Below, piece by piece: positions 13,900 through 63,789 of a stretch of DNA of 64,000 nt. Each line of letters starts with the position of its first letter. Within the stretch, counting starts at the first letter, position 1. A program made the position numbers and the translations under genes. Source of the DNA: Mizuhopecten yessoensis (Eukaryota); the NCBI RefSeq assembly GCF_002113885.1, contig NW_018407245.1, positions 64,775 through 128,774 of the forward strand, in the 5' to 3' direction. Below the pieces are notes generated by a model. It had not been told where the DNA came from. It made no database searches and worked only from the letters and a program-made list of their open reading frames with translations.

Positions 13900-16800
13900 T
13901 GTTACACTCTGTCCCCCTAGTCGGTCACATATATAAAGTTTCACCGTGCCCCCTTAATCGGTCACATCTATATACGTAACCAAGTGTTTCACCGTGCCCC
14001 CTTAATCGGTCACATCATTATACGTAACTAAGTGTTTCTCTGTGTCCCCTTAATCGGTCATATCTATATAGCTTATCAGGTGTTGCACTGTGTCCCCTAG
14101 TTAAGCACATCTATATAGCTAGCTAGGTGTTACACTGTGCCCCCTAGTTAATCACATCTATATAGCTTACCAGGTGTTACACTGTGTACCCCTAGTCGGT
14201 CACAACTATATAACTAACCAGGTGTTACACTGTGCCCCCTTAGTCAGGCACATCTATATAGCTAGCCAGGTGTTACACTGTGCCCCTTTGGTCAGGCACA
14301 TCTATATAACTAACCGGGTGTTACACTGTGCCCCTTTGGTCAGGCACATCTATATAACTAACCAGGTGTTACGCTGTGCCCCTTTGGTCAGGCACATCTA
14401 TATAACTAACCGGGTGTTACACTGTGCCCCTTTGGTCAGGCACATCTATATAACTAACCGGGTGTTACACTGTGCCCCTTTGGTCAGGCACATCTATATA
14501 GCTAGCCCGATGTTGCACTGTGCCCCTTTGGTCAGGCACATCTATATAGCTAGCCAGATGTTACACTGTGCCCCCTTAGTCAGGCACATCTATATAGCTA
14601 GCCAGATGTTACACTGAGCCCCTTTGGTCAGGCACATCTATATAACTAACCAGGTGTTACACTGTGCCCCCTAGTTAATCACATCTATATAGCTAACCAG
14701 GTGTTACACTGTGTCCCCTTAGTCAGGCACATCTACATAACTAACCAGGTGTTACACTGTGCCCCTTTGGTCAGGCACATCTATATAGTTAACATGATGT
14801 TACACTGTGTCCCTTTGGTCATACACATATATATAGCTAACCAGGTGTTACACTGTGCCCCCTTGATAATCACATCTATATAGCTAACCAGGTGTTACAC
14901 TGTGTCCCCTTAGTCAGGCACACCTACATAACTAACCAGGTGTTACACTGCGCCCCTTTGGTCATGCACATCTATATAACTAACCAGGGGTTACACTGTG
15001 CCCCTTTGGTAGGGAACATCTATATAGTTAACATGATGTTACACTGTGCCCCTTTGGCCAGGCACATCTATATAGTTAACATGATGTTACACGGTGCCCC
15101 TTTGGTCAGGCACATCTCTATAGTTAACATGATGTTACACTGTGTCCCTTTGGTCATACAGATATATATAGCTAACCAGGTGTTGCACTGTGCCCCCTTG
15201 ATAATCACATCTATATAGCTAACCAGGTGTCACATTGTGCCCTTTTGGTCAGGCACATATTTATAGCTAACCAGATGTTACACTGTGCCCCCTAGTTAAT
15301 CGCATCTATATAACTAACCAGGTGTTACACTGTGCCCCTTTGGTCAGGCACATATTTATAGCTAACCAGGTGTTACACTGTGCCCCTAGTTAATCACATC
15401 TATAAAGATAAACAGTTGCTACACTGTGTCCCCTTAGGCGGTCACATCTATAAAGCTAACCAGATGTTACACTGTGCCCCCTTAGTCGGTCACACCTATA
15501 TAAATAGCCAGGTGTTACACTGTGCCCCCTAGGCGGTCACATCTATATAGCTAGCCATGTGTTACACTGTGTCCCCTAGTTAATCACATCTATATCTATA
15601 TAGCTAACCAGGTGTCACATTGTTCCCTTTTGGTCAGTCACATATATATAGCTAACCCGGTGTTACACTGTGCCCCTTTGGTCGGGCACATCTATAAAGC
15701 TAACCAGATGTTACACTGTGCCCCTTTGTTCAGGAACATCTATATAGTTAACATGATGTTCCACTGTGCCCCTTTGGTCAGTCACATATATATAGCTAAC
15801 CACGTGTTACACTGTGCCCCTAGTTAATCACATCTTTACACTGTGCCCCCTAGGCGGTCACATCTATAAAGCTAACCAGATGTTACACTGTGCCCCTTTG
15901 GTCAGTCACATATATATAGCTAACCAGGTGTTACACTGTGCCCCCCTAGATAATCACATCTATATCCATATAGCTAACCAGGTGTCACATTGTGCCCTTT
16001 TGGTCAGTCACATATTTATAGCTAACCAGGTGTTACACTGTGCCCCCTAGTTAATCACATCTATATAACTAACCAGGTGTTACACTGTGCCCCTTTGGTC
16101 AGGAACATCTATATAGTTAACATGATGTTACACTGTGCCCCTTTGGTCAGTCACATATATATAGCTAACCAGGTGTTACACTGTGCCCCCCTAGATAATC
16201 ACATCTATATCCATATAGCTAACCAGGTGTCACATTGTGCCCTTTTGGTCAGTCACATATTTATAGCTAACCAGGTGTTACACTGTGCCCCCTAGTTAAT
16301 CACATCTATATAACTAACCAGGTGTTACACTGTGTCCCTTTGGTCGGGCACATCTATAAAGCTAACCAGGTGTTACACTGTGCCCCTAGTTAATCACATC
16401 TATATAGATAAACAGGTGCTACACTGTGTCCCCTTAGGCGGTCACACCTATATAAATAGCCAGGTGTAACACTGTCCCCCCTAGGCGGTCACATCTATAT
16501 AGTTTACCAGGTGTTACACTGTGTCCCCTAGGCGGTCACATATATATAGCTAACCAGGTGTAACACTGTGCCCCCTAGATAATCACATCTATATCTATAT
16601 AGCTAACCAGGTGTCACATTGTGCCCTTTTGGTCAGGCACATATTTATAGCTAACCAGGTGTAACACTGTGCCCCCTAGGCGGTCACATCTATAAAGCTA
16701 ACCAGGTGTTACACTGTGCCCCCTAGATAATCACATCTATAAAGCTAACCAGGTGTAACACTGTGCCCCCTAGGCGGTCACATCTATATAAATAGCCAGG

Positions 16801-17160
16801 TGTAACACTGTGCCCCCTAGTTAATCACACCAATATAGTTTACCAGGTGTTACACTGTGCCCCCTTAGTCGGTCATACCTATATAAATAGCCAGGTGTAA
16901 CACTGTGCCCCCTAGTTAATCACATCTATATAGTTTACCAGGTGTTACACTGTGCCCCCTAGGCGGTCATACCTATATAAATAGCCAGGTGTAACACTGT
17001 GCCCCCTAGTTAATCACATCTATATAGTTTACCAGGTGTTACACTGTGTCCCCTTACTCTGTATGTATATTGCGCGTGCATATGTCCTTGTTTTTACACT
17101 GTACCCTCTTATAAGTACATGATACGTACATCAGTCCAGGTGTTACACTTTGTGCCCCTG
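13900..17160. repeat. ~42-bp satellite array (ctatatagctaaccaggtgttacactgtgcccc...)
   Basis: About 3.2 kb of tandem units with degenerate edges; source of the LHCAPLVRHIYI ORFs. Confidence 0.97.
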
Positions 17161-18155
17161 TCCCTAAGTCAGTAAGTGTACAATGCCCCTCCCCACCCCC
17201 ACCCCCACCATGTACGGTGTTACACCGCTATCCCTAGTCAGTTAGTACATAGTCACACCTTGTCGTCTTCCGTAATGGAATTCCCAATCATACTAAAACG
17301 GTTTACGTTACATATAGATCGTGAAACATTTAAACAAGACTTCATGGTCTAAACCTCTGCTTAAGTTTGTTAAATAAAGCGGGCTGAAGTACAGTTCTTT
17401 CTTTGAACTGTCACAGAATATGTTACAAAACGTACCCTCAGATTGCCCGTAACAGTGTCATTACGGTAACCGAGGCTACAGGGTGTAGCCTGCCGTTTGA
17501 TGTGCAGTTTGAGTAGAGGTTCAAGACAATAGATGCGTACTCACAGACGACCTTCACGAGAAACAAAAGCGTATCATCATAAGTGCTCTTTTTACATTTT
17601 AATATATTTTTGTCTAAATAAAAGGAATATGATATTTTGGGGGACGAGATATGGTTCGCCTTTTCTTCCTGGCTGAAATGGTTATCACAGTTTGAATACG
17701 TCCCTGGTTACACTTGATACGCATGCCCCCCTAGTGTGGGTAGTTATCAACCAACCAATCACGCGTTTTCGTCTATTAGGTAACTGAATTCACTTTATAT
17801 CTATATAAAGCTGAGGTTAGTCATGGTTTTATTTGACCCCAGTATCTCAACATCGTGATTTAAAGTGAAAAATGTACGGTAAGAGAAAAGGGCAACCATT
17901 GGAACATTTAGTTAGAAAACAAAATCTGTCGTAAAAAGAATTAACATGAAATAAAATGGATCTCTATCAACAATTAAGATCTCTCATTAACGTTGAGATA
18001 TATAATATAATGTGTCAGATTAATAAATTAATTAATCGGTGATCTATACTTCATGACATAATTATAAATTATGTTGAGGTGAATATATGGTTATATAAAC
18101 CTGAAAGAGTTATATTAACCTGGACAAAGTCGATTAAAAGTTCGTAATTGTTATA

Positions 18156-18440: not shown

Positions 18441-19158
18441 GTCCGTCTGAACCACGTGTTTACGTCGACTGTAAAGGAGATGCATGAACACAAGTTATTA
18501 GTACTTATGACATTATATTGAATTAAACTAAGAGTGGTAAATTAAACACGGAGAGTACGATAAGTAATACAATCATAATGTATTCTGAATACATCCCACC
18601 TCGATGGCTTGAAGGTTGTACCAGGGCCATGCCAGTGATTTAAACCATAAGTCGAATATGATCCACTTTCGTTATAATGTCTTCAGTACTGGTAGCTTCG
18701 GCCAAAACGTTTTATTGAACTACGAACTCGTCCTGTATACAATACTAGATATTTAATTTTATCAGCGAATGTTTGCTCAAACACATCATAAAGTGACAGA
18801 CTTAAATGATAAGTGTCTAAATATATATTAATCACTTTCATATTCTCCCTCAGTTCAAATAAATTTGTTTCTTCATAAAACAACACATAGTTGTGGCCTA
18901 TCACCCATTACACCCCACTCGTCTGACACCTACCTACTGTCCGTACCCACAACGGCAGGTNAGACGGTTGGTTCTATATAGTATAGATAGCGGGGTACTG
19001 AACCAATAAATCTACCACATTTGCAAGTTAAAACAGCGTTTGATATGCATAATACGTACATGTGTATATAATGGAAGTGTACTTTTATTCAAGATAAACT
19101 GATATATCATACATATACATGTATATCGGTACACTACGTTCTCAGCAGTGTACAAGAG

Positions 19159-25423: not shown

Positions 25424-28400
25424 CTAAGAGTAAAAATGTGTTAAATCAATTAAATAATAATAATAATTTGAGGTTCTTATACACCACTTTATCACAACCC
25501 AGTTTGTAGGTCGTCTCAAAGCGGTTCACAAATTATCATCCGTGGTTATAGGGCCTTAGCAACCAGCCAATATCTTTCTAAACTCCCTGGGGAGCATACA
25601 GCAGGTGCTGCCATTTCAGCGCTCACAGCTAGCATTCAACAATTCTAGTAATGCCAAACCACGTGCTCATTTAAAGCTGAGTAGACTGGAACAATCGGAG
25701 TAAAGTATCTTGCTCAAAGATACAACACAGTGTCGTTAGGCATGCCTCGAACCCGCAACCCTTCGGTCACGAGCCTGGGGTCCTACCACTAGACTACCGT
25801 GCCTCCAATTAATAACTAGGAAAGCAACTACAGTAAAAGCCCTTGAACTCTAATCCTCTGTCGCAAAACAACTTCATTGGATAAGGAAAAGAAATCATGG
25901 AAGGCAGCTTTCGGTGTCAAAATCATTATTCTCATTCCTGTACGAATGTGACTTTTACAAAATACATGTAACAGATGGACAAAGACCGATGACAGAGTGA
26001 AGCAGGGGAGACATGAATAACAGAAGTGAAGCTTAGTATTACAAAACCATTTTTTTCTTAATCCTGTTTATTTTCAACATCATTTCCATAGCAGCTTTAC
26101 TTCAATAAGACTACAACTGCTTGAATATAATGAGGATAGACCGTGCATAGCTCCGATAACGTTACGACAACTTACCAATGTTGGGGGGTCCCATGTTACC
26201 CTGATTGGCTGCCATAGTAGTATAATGAGAATAGACCATGCATAAAAAATGTAGCTCCGATAACGTTACAACAACTTACCAATGTTGGGGGGTCCCATGT
26301 TACCCTGATTGGCTGCCATAGTAACTTGCCTTGGTGATGACCCAGGAGGAATGTTCTGAATATAAAATGAGATTAACGGTAAAAGTCATGATAGAGGATA
26401 CAAGAACACTTTCCATCATTTTTTTTCATTCTAATCAAAATTTGATTGTTCTTCTTAATACAAGAAAATGAAGTTGGTCCTTCAAAATTTTTAATTAAGA
26501 ATAATTAATTACAAGCAAGGTTAGTGTTAACTGTGACCAAGGTTATCAGGAAACTGTGTTAACTGCAAACAAGGTTAGTGTTAACTGTGACCAATGTTAT
26601 CAGTAAACTGTGTTAACTACAAACAAGGTTAGTGAGAGTATCTAAAGTGCAAACAAAATAGGAAATTAAGCTGATAACGAAGTCATACTTGAATGAAATT
26701 ATCGTAGGAATGTCAAATAATCAAATATTGTAAACTTATTTTCAGATTACCCAGGGTTTGTAATAAACATGTTTTACAGTTCAAATATTTTGGGGTTCAT
26801 ATCAATAACAGATGATTTTATAACATAAATATTAGTTGTTTGAAAATGAAAATAAGATAAGATGGGTCTTACATAGCTGTATCCCCCCTCCCAAGTCAAA
26901 TGTAACCTTTGACCCCTAAACCTTGACTGAAGAAAACCAAAATCTGATCAGGTTTAGCATCTGATGATATCATACTATGGTGTGAAAATGTAAACTAAAA
27001 GAGTGGTCAAATGTGACTTTTCACCCTTCGACCTTGACCAATGACCACCAAAATCTACTCAGTTGTAGAAATCAATGTAATAACACTCAGCTATGAATGT
27101 CAACTAAATCTGTTACTGGGTTCACGAGAGATTTTGTACACAAGCTTAAGTGATAAACCAAATACCCACTTACTAAAGTGAGGAGGGTGTAACTACATTT
27201 CTTCCCCAACCACTATTACATAGGTTTCCTTACTCCTGACTCACTGGATAAACTTGCTAGGAGTCAGTAAACACTCTAGTTACCCACTAGTGTGTAATAC
27301 CCTGGACGTGATTTGATCAGTCAATCTTCTAAATTATAACATCAAGGATCAAAGCTTTGCGATATCATCTTCCATTGTGACGTCATAGTTTATGGCAATT
27401 GTTTCCCTGATCGGAAACAGGAACATATGGTTTTCTAGACATAATATCTGAACATTGTGGGAGAAAAAGGTCCCCAAACTCGTGATGGGTTAGGGTTATC
27501 ATCTTGTTTATCTAACTCTTAGTAGTTAATTTTTAAATTGTAAAAGATACTCAGTAAACCTTGTGTCCTTATACAATTTGAAAATTAACTAACTCGAGTT
27601 AGATAAACATGATAACCAGCCATCACTCGTTGGGGAACCTCTATGTAACTATTGATGAGAGTATACCTGAGCATCATGAGAAGACTGAGGAATGATAGGT
27701 TGCTGTACAGAAAAGGATACTAGATCATGTCTACCCCTTGTCACCGTGGTAACACTAGGCACAGAACCCTGTAGCTCCAGGTGACGTGGGGAGGAGTGTA
27801 GAGGATGGTTAATCATGGGAACGAGGTGTCCCACCACCGTGTTAGGAGAGGAAGCAAGAAAGTTAGTGGCGACATAGGCCGAGTTAGTCGCCAATGGCGA
27901 TGTTGATAGTGATGAAGATGGACATGCATGTGGCGAGTGAGATAATTGCCATACAGGGTATGCGTTTGGTGGTGTTCCCTGGTGGCGCTGTTGTTGCTGC
28001 TGTTGTTGCTGAGACAAACGCTGTTGCTGCGGCTGGTTTTGCATGAATTGATTCATCCAGGGATGGCCAGGCATCCCCTTACTGTGTGGACTAGTGGACA
28101 TGTACGGCTCCTGGTACTGAGGCCGGCCTATTTGTTTAGGAGAAGACATTGGCCGGGGGTCATGACCTTGCTTCATAGGTGATACAGTTTGTCTAGGAGG
28201 TGGGTAGGAGTCGGATAGGTTGACTTTGGACCGTGGGCTACCACTGTAATTGCCCTGAGGGCTGCCACTGTTGAACTGCCTCGGTCCTGTCGACCTCTGG
28301 TTACCAAACGGCATGGGGATATTCTGAAAGGTAAACACAGGATAGTAAATACTGACTTATCTCATTTTATATGTTGGATAAGAGAAGAATCTGCCGCCGA

Positions 28401-37400: not shown

Positions 37401-40400
37401 CTTGTCACAAAGAGTTACAGAAACTTAATCTTGTCACAAAGAGTTACAGAAACTTAATCTTGTCACAAAGAGTTACAGAAACTAAATCTTGTTTGTCACA
37501 AAGAGTTACTGAAACTAAATCTTGTCACAAAGAGTTACTGAAACTAACTCTTGTTTGTCACAAAGAGTTAAAGAAACTAAATCTTGTCACAAAGAGTTAC
37601 AGAAACTAAATCTCGTCACAAAGAGTTACAGAAGCTAAATCTTGTTTGTCACAAAGAGTTACAGAAGCTAAATCTTGTCACAAAGAGTTACAGAAGCTAA
37701 ATCTTGTTTGTCACAAAGAGTTACAGAAGCTAAATCTTGTCACAAAGAGTTACAGAAACTAAATCTTGTCACAAAAAAAGTTCACAAGAATGTGAATTAC
37801 AATCCACACCTGTACAACTTACCCTCTATTGCTATGCACTTTCCGTTCCACAGTTTTTCGAATCGTGTCAGTGGCTCTGATAGTCTGATACACACCACAT
37901 TTTCCTTCATGCAGAACTCTTCAGTGTAAAAGACAAACATGCCCAACCACAACTCCCCGAAACTCTGCTGGTTCTTGCACTTCCAGATTTTGGGCTGAAA
38001 TGTTGAAATATTGAATCTGGAATCAACATCAAAACTAACCCTAAATTTTATTTATTAAAGCTGATGGGAATGATGTTGTGTCTGCTTTTCTATAGGAAGG
38101 GGGCCGGTTATAAGCATTCTTTACCTGTATATGACTATGTCAGTGGTGCCTTACATAGACTCCATAAGGACATCTGAAGCTAGACCCTAACTGTGTCCAT
38201 GATATATAGCTGTACCTCTGATATGAAACTGATTCAAGTCAATTCTCAATCTTTTTCCAAGTCTGAAAGGAATTCTTGATTTCTTTTTCAGTCATGAAAT
38301 CAATTCTAAAATGTCTTTTCCAGTTTGAAATCAGTTTTAAATTTCATTTCAAGTTTGAAATTCATGTTTTTACTCAAATTCATTTCTTTTTCAATCAGTT
38401 GACTAGAATGTAAATGGTACTTTTGTGACAATTCAGTATACATTACTGGTAAAACACAGGCTCATATATATCCAGTCCGGTAATAAGCCCACCCCCTACT
38501 TCTGACATGTTTTCATGCACAGGTCCCCTGGGCTTATCACCGGTGAAATAAGGTGTGGACATGGACACCATTTGAAGCAATGTCAATCTGAACTTGGTGA
38601 AGTGTGCACAGTTGTATCAACTCAAGAACATATTTTGAATGTATCATAGGTATAAACACTAAGTATAAACACTAAATGTGGTGCTACATTTAATACAATG
38701 TTGTTCTACACAGAGAAAATGTCCTTCAATGAAAGCCCTTACATTTCCATAATGTGATTTTCATAAACAGTGAGTCAAAAATACATTTCTTGCAAATTTC
38801 GATCACACACAATTCACCCTAAAACATGGTCTGCAATAATTACCAATTTCTCCGCGTCGTCAAAGTACCACGTGTTCCAGCCATCAATAACCCTTTCTGG
38901 TTTCTTGCCTGGATATAACTGTAACAGAGAAGTGTTCAACCTCTTACTAGAGCTACATTTATAGATCATGATTTAGTTTATTCTTACATCTTCAGATAAA
39001 ACATCAAGAATAAGATATTCATAAAATTATTTCCAATAAATTATTCCTCATTAATCCTTACAACTGATGTAGAGTTGATCAACACATCAAAAATAAGACC
39101 ACAGATATACAAATACCAGGTTTAAATTGATTATTTACACTGCTGGAGATAGTAAACATACTCACCTCCTGTAGGACTGGTAAGACTGAAGGTTTACACT
39201 GCTGGAGGTAGGTAAACACACTCACCTCCTGTAGGACGGGTAAGACTAAAGGTTTACACTGCTGGAGGTAGGTAAACATACTCACCTCCTGTAGGACTGG
39301 TAAGACTGAAGGGTTACACTGCTGGAGGTAGGTAAACACACTCTCCTCCTGTAGGACGGGTAAGACTAAAGGTTTACACTGCTGGAGGTAAGTAAACACA
39401 CTCACCTCCTGTAGGACTGGAAAGATTGAAGTTTACACTACTGGAGGGAGTAAACATACTCACCTCCTGTAGGACTGATAAGACTGAAGGTTTACACTGC
39501 TGGAGGTAGGTAAACATACTCACCTCCTGTAGGACTGGTAAGACTGAAGGTTTACACTGCTGGAGGTAGGTAAACACACTCACCTCCTGTAGGACTGGTA
39601 AGATTGAAGTTTACACTACTGGAGGTAGTAAACATACTCACCTCCTGTAGGACTGGTTAGACTGATGGTTTATACTGCTGGAGGTAGGTAAACATACTCA
39701 CCTCCTGTAGGACTGGTAAGACTGATGGTTTACACTGCTGGAGGTAGTAAACATACTCACCTCCTGAAGGACTGGTAAGACTGAAGGTTTACACTGCTGG
39801 AGGTAGGTAAACACGCTCACCTCCTGTAGGACTGGTAAGACTGAAGGTTTACACTGCTGGAGGTAGTAAACAGACTCACCTCCTGTAGGACCGGTAGGAC
39901 TGAAGGTTTGCACTGCTGGAGGTAGTAAACATACTCACCTCCTGAAGGACTGGAAAGACTGAAGGTTTACACTGCTGGAGGTAGGTAAACACGCTCACCT
40001 CCTGTAGGACTGGTAAGACTGAAGGTTTACACTACTGGATGTAGTAAACATAATCACCTCCTGTAGGACCGGTAGGACTGAAGGTTTGCACTGCTGGAGG
40101 TAGTAAACATACTCACCTCCTGAAGGACTGGTAAGACTGAAGGTTTACACTGCTGGAGGTAGTAAACAGACTCACCTCCTGTAGGACCGGTAGGACTGAA
40201 GGTTTGCACTGCTGGAGGTAGTAAACATACTCACCTCCTGTAGGACCGGCAAGACTGAAGGTTTACACTGCTGGAGGTAGTACACACACTCACCTCCTGT
40301 AGGACTGGTAAGACTGAAGGTTTACACTACTGGATGTAGTAAACATAATCACCTCCTGTAGGACCGGTAGGACTGAAGGTTTACACTACTGGAGGTAGTA

Positions 40401-43400
40401 AACATCCTCACCACCTGTAGGAGCGGTAGGACTGAAGGTTTACACTGCTGGAGGTAGTAAACAGACTCACCTCCTGTAGGACCGGTAGGACTGAAGGTTT
40501 ACACTACTGGAGGTAGTAAATATACTCACCTACTGTAGGACTGGTAAGACTGAAGGTTTACACTGCTGGAGGTAGTAAACATACTCACCTCCTGAAGGAC
40601 TGGTAAGACTGAAGGTTTACACTGCTGGAGGTAGTAAACATACTCACCTCCTGTAGGACCGGCAAGACTGAAGGTTTACACTGCTGGATGTAGTAAACAT
40701 AATCACCTCCTGTAGGACCGGTAGGACTGAAGGTTTACACTACTGGAGGTAGTAAACATACTCACCTCCTGTAGGACCGGTAAGACTGAAGGCTTACACT
40801 GCTGGAGGTAGTAAACATACTCACCTCCTGTAGGACCGGCAAGACTGAAGGTTCACACTGCTGGATGTAGTAAACATAATCACCTCCTGTAGGACCGGTA
40901 GGACTGAAGGTTTGCACTGCTGGAGGTAGTAAACATACTCACCTCCTGTAGGACCGGTAGGACTGAAGGTTTACACTGCTGGAGGTAGTAAATATACTCA
41001 CCTCCTGTAGGACCGGTAGGACTGATGGTTTACATTGCTGGAGGTAGTAGATGAGGAGGAGGATGTAGGCATAGGAGGACAGACTTCCCCTGGATGCGTC
41101 TCCAATCTCACAAACCTGTCAAGTTTATGAAATTGATATATCGTTACTTTCTATCTTAATAAGATCTGTATGGGAAAAAATGCTGTTTAATTTACACAAA
41201 ACATTTTTTTGTATCTTATTTTATGGCAAAATTGTTAACAATTTTTGTAGCTCAGTTTTATATATGATGTATGAATTATATATTTACACACCGTGACGTT
41301 ATAATACGCTATGCTGTATGGCTTGTCTATGTCCCGTTTCATAAATGCCTGTGGGTGTGTCTGTATTTGTTTGTGTACTTTACTGGACACTGGACGATTG
41401 ACCAATCGACAGGTGCCCTCACTGCAGGGACAGTTCACACGAATTTCCCGTCACCACTAGCACCGTATATAAGGTCCCGGGGCCCTAGGCAGCAGGTCTG
41501 CATTATTTACAGACGTCCTGCGATGCACTTCAGTATCTTTATATATATGTACATTGTATTCTATACAAAGCTGTGAAGCTGAGTGTACTTCTTACCTAAT
41601 TCTGGAGACAGCCGTTTCCGGTATGTATTGCTATATTTAATTACTGATAATTATATTTATATGTAAAACATATCGCTGTCAATATATTCTTTTCTATTTC
41701 GTTTATACGTTCCGTTTATATAATCCGGTTATACATTCCAATGTGAGTTTTATGAAAGGTAATTTTATATTATTTGAAGGTTTTCTTTGTATTTGTCATC
41801 ATCGTGAGTCCGCAAATTAAATGAAAGATCATCAAATTCATATGGAGTTTGACCTCTGTTTCCAACCCTGACCCAAGGTTAAATAGAAAAACATATAATT
41901 TTTTGCCTGAATCATAAATAAGTCATGTTGGGGTATGTGCATGTCACCCTGAATCAGGAATGGTGTGGAAAATATCAAATGATTCACATTTAACATCACT
42001 TGTAGTTGTCTTGGTTTCTTATTTCAAAACATCAGATGGGCCTTAATTTCCACAAAAGGAAAAGAAATTGAAAATCTTACCTTAGCAAATACTTTAAAGG
42101 CATAGCCAAGACACTTGACTCGGGGATCTAAGGAGGCATACAGTTGGATCATCTTCGTATTGTACAGTGCCTAAGGATGTATGACAAAAAATATATGAGA
42201 ACAAATCTTACCGACAGTTACACAAAATAGCATCTCCCTGTATCAAATCTTACCAACAGTTATCAAAATAGCATCTACCTGTATCAAATCTTACCAACAG
42301 TTATACAAAATAGCATCTTACTGCATCAAATCTTACCAACAGTTATACAAAATAGCATCTACTCGTATCAAATCGTACCAACAGTTATACAAAATAGCAT
42401 CAACCTGTATCAAATCTTACCAACAGCTATACAAAATAGCATCTGCCTGTATCAAATCTTACCAACAGTTATCAAAATAGCATCTACCAGTATCAAATCT
42501 TACCAACAGTTATACAAAATAGCATCTACCTGTATCAAATCTTACCAACAGTTATACAAAATAGCATCTAACTGCATCAAATCTTACCAACAGTTATACA
42601 AAATAGCATCTACCTGTATCAAATCTTACCAACAGCTATACAAAATAGCATCTAACTATCCAGTAAGTTATATTAACTAATGCCTACCTCTAATATATCT
42701 TACCAGTAAGTTAATCAAACTACTGTCTCCCTCAACTATGTCTTACCAGTAAGTTATACAAATTAATGTCTCCCTCTAAAATATCTTACCAGTAATTTAT
42801 ACAAACTAATGTTTCCCTCTTATATATCTTACCAGTAAGTTATAAAAACTAATGTCTCCCTCCAATTGGCTGCGTCTGTGTTTGAACTTGACGATTGGAA
42901 CCTTGGCTGTGGTGATAGGAAACACATTGTAAAGGCCACGGTGCTTCTTCAGCTTCTGTGTGATTTCCTCTATCAGCATCACAGGGTCCAGACCCTGTGT
43001 AAACCGACACCACAACGTAGGTTATATTTGGAAGAGATAAAATGTGCATTCCGACAAAAAAAAAGGTTTAAACAAACCCTGAATACATAAAAAAAACCAG
43101 GACAGTAACATTTTCATTTTCTGTTGCTAGTGACAAAAAAAGACAGAAATAGGTATGCTAGGACTCATTGATTCACCATGTGTGAAGTAAATATAATGAA
43201 ATATTCATTAAGGGAAATGTGTAATGAGCCAACAAGAAACCAGTATCTGATGATCAAGTAAAAATTTAAAAGATAATTACCTAGACCATGTCTATAAGCC
43301 CCAAAATAATATCCACTTTTCAAATTTCTTTAGAAAAGAACTTTCACCTGTTGCCTTTTTTAATCACAATGAAAAAGAATTCACTTCTTTGTTCTGGCAT

Positions 43401-46400
43401 TAATATTTTTACTGCATGAGTAAGATATACAATACAGTAACATCAAAATTATTGTATACGGGAATGGTGTGGGAGGTACTAACCTCACTTGTGGGCTTGC
43501 CCTGGAAGGTCACACAGAGGTCAAGGTCACTCAGTTTAAATCCAAATCCGTTATGGGATGACCCAAACAAGTGGAGCTCAGCATCTGTAGACATAGAGGT
43601 CTTTGTTTGTCACAATGTACAATAGAACGTACCTGGTAATTATGTTAACATCGTGTGGTGGCAGTAAGAAACACAGCATGTTTCCAATCCGCAAATTACC
43701 AGAGGACATGGAATTACACAAAACATATTGCATCTGATGCGTAGTAACCTCAAGATAATATTTGTTTTACTGTATAGGAACAACACAATGAGGAGTAGTC
43801 TCCTAAATTTGGTATGATGTGAGAGATACTCACTTGTGTATGATATGCGTGAAGCACCTGTGAAACATACTGTGTATGTGTTTCCGTGACATCTACATAT
43901 CTGGGTATGTTATATGTTTGTGTAACACCTACATAACCGGGTATGTCATGTGTTTGTGTAACACCTACATAACCGGGTATATCATGTGTTTGTGTAACAC
44001 CTACATAACCGGGTATATTATGTGTTTGTGTAACACCTACATAACCGGGTATATTATGTGTTTTTGTAACACCTACATACCCGGGTATATCATAAGTTTG
44101 TGTAACACCTACATAACCGGGTATGTCAAGTGTTTGTATAACACCTACATAACCGGGTATATTATGTGTTTGTATAACACCTACATAACCGGGTATGTCA
44201 TGTGTTTGTGTAACACCTACATAACCGGGTATGGCATGTGACAAGTGTTTGTGTAACCCCTACATAACCGGGTATATCATGTGTTTGTGTAACCCCTACA
44301 TAACCGGGTATATTATGTGTTTGTATAACACCTACATAACCGGGTATATTATGTGTTTGTATAACACCTACATAACCGGGTATGTCATGTGTTTGTATAA
44401 CACCTACATAACCGGGTATATTATGTGTTTTTATAACACCTACATAACCGGGTATATTATGTGTTTTTATAACACCTACATAACCGGGTATATTATGTGT
44501 TTTTGTAACACCTCCCTAACCGGGTATATCATGTGTTTGTGTAACTCCTAAATAACCGGGTATATCATGTGTTTGTGTAACACTTACATAACCGGGTATA
44601 TTATGTGTTTGTGTAACCCCTACATAACCGGGTATATCATGTGTTTGTGTAACGCCTACATAACCAGGTATGTCATGTGTTTGTGTAACACCTACATAAC
44701 CGGGTATATTATATGTTTGTGTAACACCTACATAACCGGGTATGTCAAGTGTTTGTATAACCCCTACATAACCGGGTATATTATGTGTTTGTATAACACC
44801 TACATAACCGGGTATATCATGTGTTTGTGTAACACCTACATAACCAGGTATGTCATGTGTTTGTGTAACACCTACCTAACCGGGTATATCATGTGTTTGT
44901 GTAACTCCTAAATAACCGGGTATATCATGTGTTTGTGTAACACTTACATAACCGGGTATATTATGTGTTTGTGTAACCCATACATAACCGGGTATATCAT
45001 GTGTTTGTGTAACACCTACATAACCGGGGATATCATGTGTTTGTGTAACACCTACATAACCAGGTATGTCATGTGTTTGTGTAACACCTACATAACCGGG
45101 TATATCATGTGTTTGTGTAACACCTACATACCTGGGTACAGCTCCTGAATGAACTCCTCTAGTTCCTGGCGGATATCCTCTCTTTCTTCATACTCCTCTT
45201 CCTTCACGCCAAAGTCTTCTACAAAAATTAACAATGACAAATACTGTAGATACAAAATAACCTTGACATCACATCCATTGAAACAACTTGAATATTCACA
45301 AAAGTTTGCTTCCAAGCCTACTGAGTTAAAAATTACATATTTCTACAGTAATTTCACACTTACTTGGAACTTTTTTGATTGTATTAGTTAGATTTCTCAG
45401 GAAATCTTTGGTCATTTTTGGCAGTGGTTTGAGATCAGGGAGGGCCTCTTCAGGACAAGAATTTTTTAGATGGCCTTCCTTCTCACAGATACTACAGATG
45501 ATCAAAGGGCCCTGTACACGAAACGTTTTACTGATCACAGCGATACAAATAATAATATTCAACATTTGATGTAGCATCCTATCTAGCTACAATTAGCTAC
45601 TCTAAAGTGTGTTACAGTACATCAATATACAACTCATATACAATCAACACAATGTAACCAACAAGTACAGTTTAAAGATTTCACAGGAGCTGCCTTATCC
45701 GGCTCTTACTACTAGCCCTACAAGTTGGATATGTACATATTTATTTTTTCGTGTATTTGAGAGGTTTTTACGTCCTCTTCACTACCGAGTAATTCAGTTA
45801 TCCGGCAGACGGATATTCATGCTTTAAACATGTTTACATAGTGCGCATGCCACCTCACTTGAATGCTACAGCACAAACACTGCAAGACCCACCCCAGACC
45901 ATTTTAAGTCAGTTCAAGTCTGCCTGATGGAACCTTAACACAGCCATACAGAGACCTAGAAGCTGTATTGAACGTTCAAATCTGCCCAAAATGCTATATG
46001 TACAGTAGCTCGCATTGGTTGGACAGCTCGAGATAGCTGTAAGAATGTCGTAGCCAATAATAGGCCAGCACATACAGCTATATAAACCATATTTAAAGTT
46101 TACCGAGACATACCAACGATTAGCTGAGACCTATTCCTGAAGTACATTTCCTCTGAGTTTTTATTTATAACTAAACTTGCCTTTGGTACAATTTAAGAAG
46201 GGGTTGAAATGCCTGATCAGATAATAAGAGACCAGGAGATATTTCATTTCAAACTGGGTTAAAAATGGAACAATACTGTTGTTGGTAAGGGCTATCACAG
46301 AAATATTTCAGCAAGACTTTTGCATATCTGTACATATATATAGAACTTCAGATGGTAAAATATGATAAAAGCCAACAAAACTGACACCAGAAGTCAACTG

Positions 46401-49400
46401 CGGTTACACTTTTAAAATGAGGCTGCAGCAATAATTATAGGTAATAAATAAGTTACCTTGGTCATGATAATTATATTCTGCTTTCGCAACATGATAAGGA
46501 AAAAAATTCATCAATGTTAACTGCTTACCTTACCATCAGTGAACTTTTTCTCCAAAAATTCAAAACCATACTCAAGATTGTTCAGTGTTGTTTTTGAGTC
46601 CTGACTGTTATTTTCAACAGCTGGAGTACTCTCCACCTCCTTTGAATCCACAGTTGCTTCCCTTGAATCTGACTCGTCTTCTGATTCAATCTCCTGATTG
46701 ACGTTTAAAGACTCATCTTTTGAATCAACCAACTCCTCCTTTGTATTTGCCATTGTCTCCTGTGAATTTTCTTTGGTTTCACAAACATTTTGACCATCAA
46801 GCACCAATTTTTTGCATTTTTCAGCTAAGATATCTTCTTCTGTAACAGCAGTGTCAGGTGGCCTGGCACTTTTGTCTTTTTCACCCTTCAGAGTCAATTC
46901 TGATAATGTTTCCACCAATGAGTCTTTGGCAAGTTGTTCTGAGGCGGCTTCAGAAGGAATGTCTGGGGATTTCTGATAAGACTGTCCGTTGTCACTACCA
47001 CATGTGTCACAGCTGTCGACTAATTCCACCTTTTCCGTTTGAGACATTTGTCCTGATATACCCGTGTCTGCCATCGACGGATCACAACTACAATGACTGT
47101 CTGGTTTAGAGTCTGTATCACTTCTCTCTGGTGACTCTTCTCGGTCATTTTTCACAGAATCCTGGGCAGGTTTTGAGAAATCCAGCTGTTTACAAGTACT
47201 GCTGGAGCTTTCCTTTTCCTCCTTATCTTCTGCCTTTCTACTGCTTCCTTCTTCTTCCAATTCCTCCTCCGAGGATCCTAATATCACAACGTCGGAGTTG
47301 TCTCCAGATTCCTCCTCAGCTTCATCAACAGCTGTTTTGTTTTCTTCATCACTTTTCTTTTTGTTTGCCTTCATTTGTTTTTCTTTTTGCTCCTTCAACT
47401 TTGCCTCTTTAGCCAGTCTTTCTTCTTCAGCCTTGACCTTGAGCCTGGTCTTCTCCAGAACATCTTTTTGCTTGGCTGTGAGCTTATCGTAGTTTGTGGG
47501 CAGGCTGAAGTAGAAGTAAGACTTTCTGAAGCAATCCCAGATATACTGGAATACCTCATAGTTTGTCACAGAACGAGCAGCATTTCTCTTGTGGGAAAAC
47601 GGATCTGAGGAAACAGAACATATTCTTTTTTCTTACACAAAACAGAATCTTTAAATATCACTTATTCATCAATTGTGATTCAAAATTTGTCATGAATTTA
47701 ACAGAAGTTACTGAACAAACCAATGCATGATCAATCCTTGATCATTGCGAAAAATTAAATACTATGATAAACAGGGCATCACAAATGATATGAAACCCTA
47801 TACATTGAGGTATGGCCACACTAAAAACTTGTAAGGACATCCAAAAATTTCTGTTGGAAAGAAAGGATGGTTATAACTAAAATTTCCTAAACATTAAAAA
47901 AAATGACCTTCACATTGCACTTTGAAATCTTTTTTGAGTTCTGTCATTAAATAAGTGGTACACAATTGTAATGGGATAATCAGTGATACACCGATGTAAT
48001 GGGATAATCGGTGATACACCGATGTAATGGGATAATCTGTGATACACCGATGTAGTGGGATAATCGGTGTAAAAGTAATGGGATAATCGGTGTATGTAAT
48101 GGGATAATCGGTGATACACCAATATAACGGGATAATCAGTGATACACCGATGTAGTGGGATAATCGGTGATACACCGATGTAACGGGATAATCAGTGTAT
48201 ATGTAATGGGATAATCAGTGATACACCAATGTAGTGGGATAATCAGTGTATATGTAATGGGATAATCGGTGTATTGTAACGGGATAATCGGTGGTATATG
48301 TAACGGGATAATTGGTGATACACCGATATAGTGGGTCAATCGGTAGTGGGATAATCGGTGATACACTGATGTAACGGGATAATCAGTGATACACCGATGC
48401 AACGGGATAATCGGTGATACACCGATGTAGTGGGATAATCGGTATTGGGATAATCAGTGATGCACCGATGTAGTGGGATAATAGGTGATACACCCATTTA
48501 ATGGGATAATCGGTGATACACCGATGTAACGGGATAATCAGTGAAACACCGATGTAACAGGATAATTGGTGATACACCGATGTAACGGGATAATCGGTGA
48601 TACACCGATGCAGTGGGATAATCGATGATACACCAATATAGTGGGATAATCGATGATACGCCGATGTAGTGGGATAATCGGTAGTGGGATAATCAGTGAT
48701 GCACCGATGAGGAGGGATAATAGGTGATACACCCATTTAATGGGATAATCGGGAATACACCGATGTAACGGGATAATCAGTGCAACACCGATGTAACAGG
48801 ATAATTGGTGATACCCCGATGTAACGGGATAATCGGGGATACACCGATGTAACGGGATAATCTGTGATACACCGATGTAACGGGATACTCGGCGATACAC
48901 CGATGTAGTGGGATATTCGGTGATACACCTATGTAACGGGATAATCAGTGAAAAACCGATGTAACAGGATAATTGGTGATACCCCGATGTAACGGGATAA
49001 TCAGTGAAACACCGATGTAGCAGGATAATTGGTGATACACCGATGTAGTGGGTTAATCGGTAGTGGGATAATCGGTGATACACCGATGTAACAGGATAAT
49101 CGGTGATACACCGATGTAGTGGGATAATCGATGATACACCGATGTAGTGGGATAATCGGTAAAACACCCATTTAATGGGATAATCGGTGATACACCGATG
49201 TAACGGGTGAATCGGTGATACACCGATGTAGTGGGATAATCGGTGTATATGTAATGGGATAATCGATGATACACCAATATAGTGGGATAATCGATGATAC
49301 ACCGATTTAGTGGGATAATCGGTGAAACACCCATTTAATGGGATAATCGGTGATACACCAATGTAACGGGATAATCGGTGATACACCGAGGTAACGGGAT

Positions 49401-52400
49401 AATCGGTGTATATGTAATGGGATAATCGATGATACACCAATAAAGGGGGATAATCGATGATACACCGATGTAGTGGGATAATCGGTGAAACACCCATTTA
49501 ATGGGATAATCGGTGATACACCGATGTAACGGGATAATCGGTGATACACCGATGTAACGGGATAATCGGTGTATATGTAATGGGATAATCGGTGAAACAC
49601 CAATGTAGTGGGATAATCGGTATGTAACGGGATAATCAGTGATACACCGATGTTACGGGATAATCAGTGATACACCGATGTTACGGGATAATCGATGATG
49701 CACTGATGTAATGGGATAATTGGTAGTGGGATAATCGGTGATACACCAATGTAGTGGGATAACCGATGTAATGGGATCATGATAGTCACCTTCAATAGCA
49801 ACTCTCTTTGTATTCCATTTCTTTTGAGACCTGGTGAGGAATTCCTCATGCCGTAAGGATACCACATACTGGCTGTTGTCAAACTCCAGGCAGTAGAATC
49901 GAAGCATGTCAAGCCACAGGGCCCCCACACTCTTAGTGTTGTCTGTATGCCATTTCCCAGCCTGCACATGGACAAAATAGGAACCAGTTTAGTTTAAGAC
50001 AATTGTTGTGGGTTTTAAACAACAGGAAAGAGGCAAATATATGTAAAGATTACTATTTATCACACCTAACAAGCTTGATATATGTCCCACTCTGACTGTA
50101 AATTAATTCTCCTTCATGTTATTTTGTGTCATAGAAAATCTACTCTCACAGCTGAGACACTGAGCCTTTAACAACTGCTCATAAAAGGATTTTATTTGTG
50201 AATTATTGATATGAATAATTGAGTTTACTCATAGTATAATTTGATTTTTAATATCATCAACAAAAGTGTGGATGATTAAATTAAGAGAAGTCAAAAATTG
50301 TTTATGGATTGACAACGAAGGACAAAAGACAAGTGGAATAGATAGATTTCATCTCAGGTGACCTAAAACACAAAGAAGTGGAATTTTTACTCGAATGTCC
50401 AGATAAATTACATATTAACCTCTTCTTTGATCCTGGTAAAGTTGGCTTCCTCTGGAGGAGGTGTCCTTTTCCTCTTGGTAGGCGACTTATTCTCATCATC
50501 ATCAAGGCCCTGATTTTACAAAAACACATTACATATATACATACATAATGTGATTTTTCAATACTGTCAGACAGAAAACACAAAAAACGAGAAAATATCA
50601 GGACAGTAATCACATGTTTTACCAGATATTACAGTGGACATACAAACAGGGGAAAATGACAAAATAATAATTACATGGTTTTTATCAGGCCTTACAGAAC
50701 ACACTCAAAAATATCTGATCATGTAAAGAACTCAAGATTATCCATTGTTATAAATCTCGTCATTTGCAAACAATAAAACAATAACTTGACTTCATTTAAC
50801 ATTATTATATACATATGATGTAGCATTCAAATAAAATGAATTGTTAGACTGTTAAAACTACCAGCCTAATCACTATTTAGAATCTGTTCTTGAATCAATA
50901 CAAGAAATATCGTTCAATAGCAGGCTTTGATTAATTGAAATGCAGGAAAATAATTCTATGAAATGTTCAGAAAATTCAACGATTTACCAAAGTCCTCCCT
51001 AAAGACAAAATGTTTAACATCTTGGTGTAGCTTATTACTAATGACAAATGACAAAGACTTACCAGATCAAGCACGGGAAGTACGGCTGGTTTACACTTCT
51101 GTAGATAATGCACAAGCAATAGGGAGAAACTGTAGGCTGGTAGTGTCCCCTCGTCTTGTCTGTCTATCTTACAGATCTGATAACAAAAACACAAAAATAC
51201 AGTAGGCAGGTAGAGTCTCCACTTCTAGTGTGTCTATCTTACAGATCTTATATACACAAAAAGGAAATTTTCTCACACAGTGGAGTACACAACCAGAGAA
51301 GGCTGATATCTCTCCTCAAACTACAAAATCATCTACAATGATACTTTTTGAAGGACAATACTTCTAGTCAAGCCATAAAACATTCCAGGAAATAGAAGTT
51401 GATTTAAAGTTTTCAAGTTTGCAGTGAATTTACACAAACGACATTTCCATTTTATGAGTCCTACCTTAGCAAAGTATCTGAACACGATTCCCAGCTTTCT
51501 GACCCTAGGGTCAATATCTGCAAAGATGGAAAGCAGAGTGGACGTTTGTGGGGCCTGGGATCCAGTTATGGTCAGCTGGCAAGACAATGACCCGGTCTGG
51601 TCAGAAAAGTAGATACAAGGAATTTTAGCTGCGAAATCACTCCTCACTTCTTTGTAGTTTTCTGTGAATGTAAAAAGTAGTACATTGTAATTAAACTATG
51701 TGTTTAATGATCTACTTTATCTGGTACATGTGCAATATTTGTTATTTAAGAAATATCTACGAAATTATTACGCAAACACAAAAGCATCTCCATAACAGTA
51801 TTCTAACTTTCAGAGAAGCAAGCAAACTTTTCTTACATGATAAATGAATTCAATTTTATTCGCCGTTTCTTCTTCTCAAAATGTCTGTTCGTGGTTAAAA
51901 CTCTGATGATACCCACTGTATTCACTAATCATCCAAATTATCTTGTAATGACAATATTATATTTCCAGTAATATTAAAAGTAAAATTCCAGCAAGCTTAA
52001 ACTGTAATTAATAGGTGAGCTACACTGCCAACCCTTGCTATTTAGGAGGGAGACTCCCAATCTTGGACCCTTAAATTCAGTATTACCAACCAGTGAATTT
52101 GCTAACCTATTTCTATGTTCTCAGATCTTATGATTTCAACTGAAAGGGCAACTCAAAATATGTCATTTTAAAGGATTATTCTGTCTGTAGGGTGGATAAA
52201 CACACATTTTATTTATGTTTTTTTTTTTAAATTTTGAGCCCATGGAATCACCCCAATGGAAAGCTCACAAGTATGCTAACATCTGAGTTACAATACAGAT
52301 ATATAAAGGTGAGTGATATATGGGATTCAAGTTACACGAAACACAGGCACAGATGAGTGCTGACCTGAATCTTTCATGTCTTTGAAAGCCTTAGTAAGGG

Positions 52401-59335: not shown

Positions 59336-59447
59336 ATGTTTCGCACTGCCGGTTACTATCGTGGTGTGAATTGTCCATACTTTGCCAGCGGACTTTGTGA
59401 ACGCCCGCATTGTCACTTCAGACACGTCAAACAAGATCAGAATGAAG
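59336..59447 (+). CDS. REXO1: RNA exonuclease 1 homolog, coding exon 1
   Basis: MFRTAGYYRGVNCPYFASGLCERPHCHFRH resembles the REXO1 N-terminal C-C-C-H motif; donor GAAG|gtagaa, phase 1. Confidence 0.85.
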
Positions 59448-61543
59448 GTAGAAAATTAAATGATAAACAAAAAAGTAGACCCGTTGTAATTAATCACGCC
59501 ACTCGTGTCTTCATTGCCAGGAAGTTTAAAGGCATAAGAGTGGCATTTATAAAAGCTTGATCATCTGAACAAATGATCTAGACAAATCGTAAGAGCCTAT
59601 GGTGATTATTAACAAGTCTTGCAAAAAGAAAAACAATCGTAAATAAGACGGGTAAATTGTTCACTTTCTCCAAAATAATGGCTTTTCCTACAGACTAAGA
59701 CGTTTTGGAAACTTTTGTCACGTGTTTCTTACTCAGATTGATGAGCAAGATAAGTGTAGGCTTCTTTTCACTCTCTTTAGGTATCACGGATACTGTTTTT
59801 AATTTATGTGTATAATATATTTATATATATATATAAGAGAAGGAGAAATGCACGGCTAGACCATGTGACCATGTTTCGAACCCGGGACCCTCCGAACTCT
59901 AACCAACTGATCTTTCTGGTCATCAGGATTGACATAGTACAGTTCTGCTTCTTTCCTCTCCCCTTTTTATAAATCTTCACCCCAAAAGACACAACTATTT
60001 ACCACCCAAATTTGATAATCCCCTTAATTGCCAAGCATTCAACCAGTGCTTGAAACAAGGGTTGGCAAGCTCAACAACTTTGTTGTAGGAGAACGAGAAA
60101 TGCATGGCCAGACCAGGTTCAAAACTGGGTGCTCCAACCCTATACAGAATTAAAAGCTCTTTTACCAATTGAGCTTCGATTCTTGTTTAGTTCTGCTACA
60201 GGTTAATTGAGATACTTGACAAGTAGTACACTTGTCCAGTTCACCATGAGCTATAGGTGAATTGGGTAGCTATTCGTGGCAGGTTTTAATTGTACATTGG
60301 ATTACAGTCACGTTCTTGCTTAAGCCTAGGCCTCGGCTCAGTAAGTTAGAGCAGCAGACTTGGAAGCGAAGGGTTGCTGGTGTGATCCCTGGTGGACATC
60401 CTATTATATAGTCTCTTTCCTGTTGCAAATGACACTTCCTTTTAGTTTGGTGACAGGCTATAGCTAGGGTCTGTTTTCTTTAATGCTGTTTCAAATAGTT
60501 CGACCGAAGTTGTTCTTTACGAAAAAAGTGATGGACCTAGTAATATAATATGATGGTGCTTTCTAGCAAGCCTTGGAAAAATCTTTCAAGGCCGCTGGTT
60601 CAATCCCCACTGGAAGTTCTATTAACTGATGCATACAGAAAAAGATACATCTGGGATGAATTCAAACCAGGAATCTTGACAACTGATCTACTGACAGTTG
60701 ATCTATCACCTGAGCTACTTTGTAATCATAAGATATCAGTGATTGAACCAGGCTGTATATGTCTGGTTCAATTTACCTCTGGTCTATATTTGAGGTCTTT
60801 GCCTCTGAACATGCATAGACAGATTTAGTGGGTTGCATGATGCCCTCCCTTAAATAGCATTGGTATTTTGGAGATTATTTACCTTAAAAATGACCTAACT
60901 ATGTACATGTATCCCCATCCTCTAATATAACATGTGGGACATACATGTACATTCTTGTTATAATATTGGAAGTGAGGGCCATCTGACCTCTGACAGAAAT
61001 GTGCTCTAATAGCTGAAAACATCAGTTGTTTTACTATTGACAGATTTTTTTGTAACACTGAAAATATCTATACATTTTGTAAGAATTAAAGCACACATGC
61101 ATGTAGAGGCATACATATAGAATGTTACAGGAAATACAGTCCCAAATAAATCAAGCCAACTTCTACACGATCATCATGATAATGTTCATTCCTGCAAATT
61201 TTTGGTCTCCTGCTTCCTTTAACTGATCAAGATTCCATGAAGTTGTAGTTTATACTTGTAATGATAATTTCTGATGTAAATGTGATGTTCCAATATATTA
61301 CAGAAATATATTCCACAAATCATTTTAATAACCCGAAGAAGCTCTAAAACAGTCAATTTCATTCAAAGACTTGGTCAGTCTGTAATATGGTTACATAGAA
61401 AATTACTGCTGTTGACATCACAATACCTCAGAGAGGCTTCTTTCTTATCCTAAAATATTTCTCCAGCTATTGTTAGAAATTCTTGAAATCTGGAACTATT
61501 GAAACAGTGCTGTTGTCAAAGTCGATCTCTGTATTGCTTTCAG

Positions 61544-63600
61544 ATCTGAATAGCAGGCCAAAGACTCCAACTCCCTCAAAAGATGCAAGCTCATATTTGG
61601 AGAAGCTCTCTGATGGACAATTCCCATTGACCAGTGAATCTATCAAGTCCTACTCCAAGGATAATGATGTGGACGTTGATGAAGAGAAATCTAACAATCA
61701 CCAAATTCTTAACAAATATACAGGTGAACCCATAATCAATGAGAAAAGTGAATGTTATGAGTTGGGACCAAATATAAATGAAGTCAATAAATACACGGGG
61801 AAACCTGTGGAGTACAACAAATACACTGGAGAACCTATTTATCATAAAGAGGATAGTTCATCGTCATCTCTGAACAAACGATGGACAGAGGCGGTGCTTG
61901 GGAGTGACACCCCAACCTATAATCCTACTCCATTAAGTGAATTACAGAAGAGAAACGCAAATCCAAATCTGAACAAATATTCATTGTTGGCAAGTACTAT
62001 CTCTTCCAGCCAAGAGTATGATCCCGAATCAAACTACTCCACCTCGACCAAAGTCCACCACGTGTCCGTTCCACAGGTTGGCCGTCCCTCCTACAGCAGT
62101 AAGAGGTCCTGTAGCTATGATCCTGCAAATGTCAAGTATAAAAAACCGGTTCTCAAAAGACAACGTGTGGCTTCATTCTTTGATGCAAAATTTAGTTCAG
62201 ACGAAGAAGAAGAAAATAAAAATGTTGAAAAAGATGGAAAAGATGAAAAAACAGTTTCAAGTGATAAGGAAGACAAATTTCATCTGAAGGATGTCAATTA
62301 CTTTGAGAAACTTTTAGATGGACCCAAGGATGTGGATGAAAAGAAAAGTCGTGTTAAGGTTGAAAGTGATGATTCCTTGGATTCTCTGGATGAAGATGTG
62401 GATGTCACACCGTTACTTGAAAAGTGTCGAAGACGTTCACAGTCTGGGGGAAACGAACAGGACAGTACAGAGGAGAAAACAGATGTTAAATCCAAAGTCT
62501 CCAATGTAGATACAGGGGACAGTTCCTCTTTACACTCTAAAACAGAAACCGTCTCTAAGAAAGGCAAAGAAAGCTCTGATTTAACTGATAAAAAGACAAA
62601 GAAAAAATCCACAGCTGAATCGGTCCCCAGTACTGGTGACAAAAATGACAAATCTACTGAAATTTGTGATAGAAATGACAAGAAAAATCATATTGCTTCG
62701 TCATCACATTCAAAATCTTCCCATCATGGATCAAATAAATCACAGAAGGAAACTTCATCATCAAAAATATCTCAGGGGAACGGGATTTCAACTCATAAAT
62801 CAACTAAGGAGTCATCGAAAAATTCCCAACCTGGGACTAGTAATTCATCTCACAAATCTTCAAAGGAGTCGTCATCGAAATCCTCACATCATCACAAAAC
62901 CGAATATAGCAAATCTTCACATAACAGTGATAAGAGCTCACACCACTCTTCATCGAAAAAGCCTCATTCAAGCACATCGTTATGTAAGGTCAAGGACAAA
63001 AGCAAATCCCGAGATTCACAAGACAGCAAATCGTCAGAAACTGAAAATCACCTTGTGTGTGATACTGACAAGTCAAACGATTTATCAAAATCATCATCAT
63101 CTTCATCATCATCAAATAATCATCGCAAACATTCACGACATTCAAATTCTGAATCATCGTCGTCATCTTCAGACAAACACCAGCATAATTCAGAAAGAGG
63201 TCACGATACAAATTCTGTTCACACTTCGTCACATAGCTCGGGGTCTAGTAAAGGTAGCAAGGACATGAAAAATAGAGCCAAACAAAAAGACGACAAGACT
63301 AGTAAAAACGATAAAAAGCGGACCAAGTCGGTGAGTTCTGAAAGGCGGAAGTCTTCAGAGACGATCAAGAAAAAGATTGTGGACATCAACATTGATCTTT
63401 TTGGTGCAAACAGTGAGGACGAGGAGGACGATGAGGATTTGGTGGAGGTGCCGATGGCGTCAGACGGACATATATCGGAGAGTGACATGGTGGCGTTTCT
63501 CAATGATAGTGATTACTCCGATGAAGACATTGACAGATATGATGAGTGTTTAAGAATCTTTCAGGAAAACAAAGGAGTAAAGAATAACACCAACAAAAAG
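61544..63600 (+). CDS. REXO1: RNA exonuclease 1 homolog, large coding exon 2; gene continues beyond the window
   Basis: ctttcag|AT phase matches exon 1; REXO1-like motifs YNPTP, EYDPESNYS, AKFSSDE, ECLRIF; donor AAG|gtatag. Confidence 0.82.
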
Positions 63601-63789
63601 GTATAGTACTAGCTAGTTCACACTTTTAAAAGTAAATGACATCTGGTAGAAAGCTTAAGGCTCATGCATCCTCAGGGTGATGATATTTTGCCTGCAGCAT
63701 GCATGGGCGAATCAAAAGCTATTAGTTTTGTTCTATCCTGATTAACAATTCACAAGGTCAGATGTACAAGTGCTGAAAATTTTGAACAA

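Follow-up and report, generated by a model that had tools for sequence, protein, structure and literature searches.

A minisatellite of repeated exon ends and 5' splice sites in a TUT4/7 intron of the scallop Mizuhopecten yessoensis, with related arrays in two other scallop genera

In amphioxus, several genes, including Adh3 and globin genes, carry 'mirages', minisatellite-like arrays of exon-intron boundaries duplicated in tandem at either exon end, which leave normal splicing undisturbed and evolve in concert within each array, with the edge units escaping homogenisation; their copy number is low (3-6 in a globin gene) and their units reach about 160 base pairs (bp) (PMC3087553). A second system of this kind is the 37-bp minisatellite of human F7 IVS7, the first unit of which lies over the exon-intron boundary. 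Analysis of 50 constructs revealed that its pseudo-donors are functional, yet the most upstream of the identical donors is picked by its position; the first donor meets no competition from the pseudo-sites, some of which would give premature stops (PMC1557585). Here, we analyzed a stretch of 64,000 nucleotides (nt) from the scallop Mizuhopecten yessoensis (assembly GCF_002113885.1, contig NW_018407245.1, positions 64,775 to 128,774 of the forward strand; hereafter the window, to which all positions without a prefix refer), in which an intron of a TUT4/7 gene on the reverse strand contains a long array built from the end of a coding exon together with its 5' splice site, or donor. The human CBS gene carries a comparable element, a 31-bp variable number tandem repeat (VNTR) that spans the exon 13-intron 13 boundary and creates repeated donors. 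According to the title of a 2001 paper by Lievers et al., this VNTR is reportedly associated with reduced enzyme activity.

The scallop arrays resemble the amphioxus mirages in being boundary-derived tandem copies found in several genes of one genome, but they reach tens of copies, fill most of an intron and are hosted by a mollusc. With F7, the array studied here shares the arrangement of an authentic donor followed by identical pseudo-donors, whereas the two differ in size (5-9 units of 37 bp in F7, 32 units of 59 bp here) and in the nature of the evidence, which comes directly from minigenes for the vertebrate gene and from gene models for donor use in the scallop. The CBS VNTR is likewise a boundary-spanning repeat with repeated donors, and differs in its reported link with enzyme activity.

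The array occupies positions 39134-41049 (reverse strand) and was reported by Tandem Repeats Finder as a single head-to-tail array with a period of 59, 32.4 copies, 91% matches, no indels and a score of 3107. Its unit, which has the size of a minisatellite repeat (59 or 60 bp), crosses the exon-intron boundary and includes both exon sequence and splice signal: the last 48 nt of a TUT4/7 coding exon are followed by 11-12 nt of intron, and in the consensus these 48 nt of conserved coding exon precede GTGAGTATRTT. The founder is the end of the exon termed 'exon 16' in a previous sequence-only reading of the window (41002-41115, reverse strand; 38-residue translation), which belongs to the C-terminal catalytic module, and the first unit is this real exon end itself (41002-41049, YYLQQCKPSVLPVLQE), continued by GTGAGTATATT. 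The authentic 5' splice site, with its GT at 41000-41001 (reverse strand; GAG/GTGAGT, the slash marking the boundary), is the first of 32 donor contexts found by a motif scan of the array at a spacing of 58-60 nt, and is followed by 31 pseudo-donors. The GT is kept in 31 of the 32 copies and the exact 9-mer GAG/GTGAGT in 23; the other nine read TAG/GTGAGT (one), GTGATT (four), GTGAGC (two) and GTG/GTGAGG (one), or have lost the GT (one, GAG/GAGAGT). The sequence-only reading had derived a satellite of about 32 tandem donors, mostly with the consensus GAG/GTGAGT, from an exon end plus 5' splice site, and repeat finding, motif scan and unit alignment agree with it on both the source and the number. 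The acceptor and the start of the next exon at 38918 also lie where it had placed them: the next coding exon (LYPGKKPERVIDGWNTWYFDDAEKL; 38844-38918, reverse strand) was confirmed by its translation and a protein match, and the acceptor AG is at 38919-38920. Between this acceptor and the array remains a unique tail of about 215 nt (38919-39133, reverse strand), which aligns with the tail of the corresponding intron of Pecten maximus, while the array itself fills most of the 2.1-kb intron.

Alignment of the units revealed that unit 2 is 95% identical to the exon copy and that this figure declines distally, to about 80-87%. The proximal units keep the exon's CCTACCGG and the distal ones carry CTTACCAG together with one extra base, and blocks of two units recur along the array. 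The unit had no match outside its own array anywhere in the 988-Mb M. yessoensis assembly. No N was detected in or beside the array by a scan of the window, the sole N of which is at 18961. RNA folding of the exon end with two units gave a z-score of -1.29, which is not unusual, and hairpins were predicted alike at the first and later donors.

The identity of the gene was established exon by exon, as the searches used single exons or database proteins and joined exons were translated only for reading frames. Single exons matched the Pfam families MTPAP-like_central, TUTase, NTP_transf_2, PAP_assoc and zf-CCHC, giving the layout of TUT4/TUT7 (ZCCHC11/ZCCHC6), namely two nucleotidyltransferase plus PAP-associated modules and CCHC zinc knuckles, and the closest PDB structures in the exon searches were human TUT4 and TUT7. 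Most exons of the window are 100% identical to XP_021359551.1 (terminal uridylyltransferase 4-like [Mizuhopecten yessoensis]), other tblastn segments being 91-99% identical; the repeated exon is identical to this protein over the exon end and junction, and its tblastn segment, which extends one codon beyond the exon on either side, scores 95%. The 38-residue peptide of the repeated exon aligns with residues 1109-1145 of TUT4 (8ost_A, E 7e-19) as well as with TUT7 and, more weakly, with the equivalent place in the N-terminal module. Since this peptide aligns with human TUT4/TUT7 and with the N-terminal module, the exon copy is ancestral and the array derived.

We then considered what the additional donors would do to the reading frame. 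Splicing at donor 2 would add 59 nt and shift the frame, with exon 17 staying open and a stop in exon 18, whereas use of any donor from the third onward would include an in-frame TGA created at the second donor (codon 58 of the extended exon). These consequences, which had been deduced previously from the letters of the window, are borne out by translation of the extended exon and of the joined exons. The accompanying claim that the first donor alone gives the conserved protein also holds: the RefSeq model XP_021359551.1 and OWF47382.1 each contain a single PVLQE followed directly by LYPGKKPE, which corresponds to the first-donor junction (PVLQE/LYPGKKPE), and the same junction is present in the orthologues of P. 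maximus, Argopecten irradians and two oysters. The scallop homologues were found by a search with one exon and then with its best match. No scallop transcript-derived fragment over the junction was found with residues 1090-1340 of the M. yessoensis protein as query (the best match was only 63% identical), and a 108-residue open frame from the array had no match in the protein database. Use of the first donor in M. yessoensis appears well supported by the models and by conservation, if indirectly. The choice need not be puzzling, because in human F7 IVS7 the most upstream of identical donors wins by position.

Besides this array, the gene has at least three more introns that open with copies of their own exon end and donor. 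The exon ending in EGDISFYNLL, identified by its PDB matches to TUT4/TUT7, is followed by GTAAGA and gives rise to a 43-bp array of 4.8 copies, which passes into a derived 42-bp array of 10.8 copies whose units retain GGTAAGA (42202-42866, reverse strand). A 36-bp array of 35 copies (43876-45138, reverse strand) begins 7 nt inside an exon end (ELYPG/GTATGTAGGTG), and its copies carry GGTTATGT rather than GGTATGT. The third case is an exact two-copy direct duplication of 104 bp (26115-26322, reverse strand), whose unit joins the 3'-terminal 44 nt of an exon to GTAAGT and some 55 nt of intron, with 49 nt identical between the copies; it looks like a donor array at a two-copy, birth-like stage. 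Two further arrays of the gene start 6 and 21 nt past their donors. The latter is a 28-bp array of about 65 copies at 47950-49768 (reverse strand) that begins 21 nt past the donor AAG/GTGACT and occupies most of a 2.2-kb intron. Among the ten intronic arrays of the gene, six have their 5' edge no more than 25 nt from the donor, where arrays placed uniformly in their respective introns would give 1.45 (P about 6e-5); no array comes within this distance (≤25 nt) of an acceptor. Recurrence of junction arrays in this genome is thus seen at three more junctions of the gene and in a genome-wide excess of the motif, as a rough count over the whole assembly gave 8656 periodic triples of AGGTRAGT (15-45 nt apart) versus 1930 for the reversed motif. 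Many of the genome-wide matches are supplied by very large arrays at C42:245877-290935, which have a 50-bp unit with AGAG/GTGAGT.

The orthologous loci of two other scallop genera, P. maximus (L007, 31 kb, taken from a 52.7-Mb record of a chromosome-scale assembly) and A. irradians (L006), were compared with the window. At the junction of the M. yessoensis array, P. maximus has a 27-bp array of 31 copies (L007:16837-17678, forward strand), the unit of which consists of the last 20 nt of the exon and GTGAGTG, with 23 perfect GAG/GTGAGT donors. Because 27 is a multiple of 3, donors 2 and 3 of Pecten would yield in-frame insertions, of 9 and 18 residues, rather than frameshifts. The P. maximus array closes with a partial long unit (17680-17699) whose truncation point coincides, to the base, with that of the partial unit ending the Mizuhopecten array, and 44 of 52 bases agree between the two ends; within the 31-kb P. 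maximus locus, the 20-mer derived from the exon is confined to the exon itself and the spot where the array ends. Since both arrays finish in the same partial long unit, the comparison suggests that Mizuhopecten and Pecten share a founding duplication, from which different sub-units would then have been amplified in each lineage. The orthologous intron of A. irradians is a plain 498 nt without an array. The state of this junction is therefore 59 bp x 32 in Mizuhopecten, 27 bp x 31 in Pecten and no array in Argopecten, and the protein tree of the three scallop genera, an unresolved trichotomy, does not distinguish loss in Argopecten from never having had one. A. irradians has instead a 58-bp array of 72 copies with 96% matches (L006:1575-5748, forward strand) whose unit derives from an exon end in the N-terminal module (YYLQKCTPAVLPVLDL/GTAA), a position paralogous to that of the M. 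yessoensis array, and no array was found at the equivalent exon end of M. yessoensis (window around 51063).

Other junctions of the gene behave similarly. P. maximus carries a 28-bp array of 57 copies, with CAG/GTATGT intact, at the junction that bears the 43876-45138 array in Mizuhopecten. The intron after the exon ending in QPKG opens with an array in all three genera (window about 33003, reverse strand; L007:23113-23481; L006:16573-19330), the units being 30 bp long in Mizuhopecten and 37 bp, apparently related, in the other two genera; AAAG/GTAGGC is retained in many units of Pecten. Altogether, P. maximus has donor-seeded arrays at three junctions besides the one shared with the M. yessoensis array, as well as one acceptor-seeded array, and A. 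irradians has, besides the 72-copy array, two more that were seeded by a donor or exon end and one seeded by an acceptor. The acceptor-seeded arrays (L007:6899-7169, 3 copies; L006:8698-8996, 8.5 copies) repeat an intron end plus exon start and mirror the donor arrays, in that the genuine exon start comes last among the copies.

Such elements are already known from amphioxus mirages and human F7, they are common in scallops, and the TUT4/7 array is a new case. We consider it very likely that this array is a 'mirage'-type junction minisatellite, a largely neutral by-product of a recurrent process in scallops, with the pseudo-donors as passengers. Most likely, this process seeds arrays at scallop splice junctions, mostly donors, and is not a regulatory device specific to TUT. 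Under this explanation, a short tandem duplication across the exon-intron boundary of the TUT4/7 exon would have arisen and been tolerated, with splicing staying at the first, most upstream donor. The unit would then have been amplified within the intron to about 32 copies, presumably by slippage or unequal exchange, so that the intron would have grown from a few hundred bases to 2.1 kb, and the array would now be drifting. The pseudo-donors are probably silent or nearly so, because the choice among close identical donors is positional in human F7 and may be so in scallops. Several points weigh against this explanation. The F7 rule comes from 5-9 repeats in mammalian cells, and its validity for the 32 repeats of a mollusc is assumed. 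The use of the first donor is deduced from conservation and from the gene models, and other donors may be used at a low level. The reported association of the CBS VNTR with reduced enzyme activity would imply that such arrays are not always neutral. Moreover, a neutral process with uniform placement leaves the preference for donors unexplained, and the genome-wide AGGTRAGT count owes part of its size to a few large arrays and is no evidence that they lie at exon ends.

The presence of arrays of different unit length at the same TUT4/7 junctions in two or three genera, together with a strong excess of arrays at donors over acceptors, raises the possibility that particular scallop 5' splice sites are hot spots at which arrays are born and reborn by transcription- or splicing-coupled mutation, and that the number of live pseudo-donors might lower TUT4/7 output. 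We regard this idea as tentative and rather doubtful. If such hot spots were real, they would favor transcription- or splicing-coupled mutation over random duplication followed by tolerance.

The sequence-only reading had also offered a regulatory explanation, in which the approximately 30 decoy donors bind U1 or divert transcripts to nonsense-mediated decay, so that copy number tunes TUT4/7 output. It could draw on the 23 donors of 32 that are exact copies of the authentic 9-mer, on the premature stop that each of donors 2-32 would bring, and on a precedent of sorts in the reportedly reduced enzyme activity with the CBS VNTR. However, arrays at junctions occur generally, both in this gene and its orthologues and across the genome; the orthologous intron of A. 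irradians lacks one; donors 2 and 3 of the in-frame 27-bp unit of P. maximus would not trigger decay; and the pseudo-sites of F7 do not compete with the first donor. In a test for selection within the array, donor bases were not significantly better kept, varying in 3.5% of cells versus 6.25% elsewhere in the unit (Fisher p 0.07, with non-independent cells). A role in tuning TUT4/7, whether as a U1 decoy or as a decay rheostat, finds no support in these observations, and we judge it unlikely.

It is also conceivable that the array serves as raw material for alternative splicing, as an acceptor-like CCTCCAG lies 36 nt before each donor and, in most units, the 36-nt segment between CCTCCAG and GAG/GT would form an in-frame cassette of 12 residues (QCKPSVLPVLQE). 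We consider this very unlikely: only 23 nt separate a donor from the next such acceptor, so that splicing would have to skip one unit or more; no second PVLQE is present in either protein model; and units 6, 10, 12, 13, 18, 25 and 28 carry a TAG in the frame of the cassette. That the array or its length is an artefact of a fragmented assembly (82,659 contigs), in which the length of a 59-bp repeat array with 91% identity is difficult to determine from short reads, seems highly improbable, given the distinct and ordered unit variants and sub-blocks, the gradient from proximal to distal units, the absence of gaps, and the related array with the same terminal partial unit at the same junction in the separate chromosome-scale assembly of P. 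maximus.

Taken alone, the M. yessoensis array adds another junction minisatellite to a genome rich in them; its value lies in being a natural experiment. One junction carries 32 near-identical strong donors in Mizuhopecten and 31 in Pecten, and a paralogous exon end carries 72 in Argopecten, all in the gene for an essential RNA-modifying enzyme, and the gene models still splice correctly. The system bears on whether a mollusc, faced with 2 kb of decoys, obeys the positional rule of F7, by which the first donor wins. In addition, the comparison of three genera can be read as a time series that includes birth (two copies), amplification, re-cutting to a new unit length, and loss.

Not all arrays of the window are junction-seeded. 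A 48-bp array of 65 copies at 13938-17055 was considered as a further candidate and rejected, as neither edge contains a recognisable exon end. An adjoining gene on the forward strand (59336-63606) has a start resembling a CCCH-type zinc finger and a 707-residue open frame rich in Ser and Lys (61483-63606).

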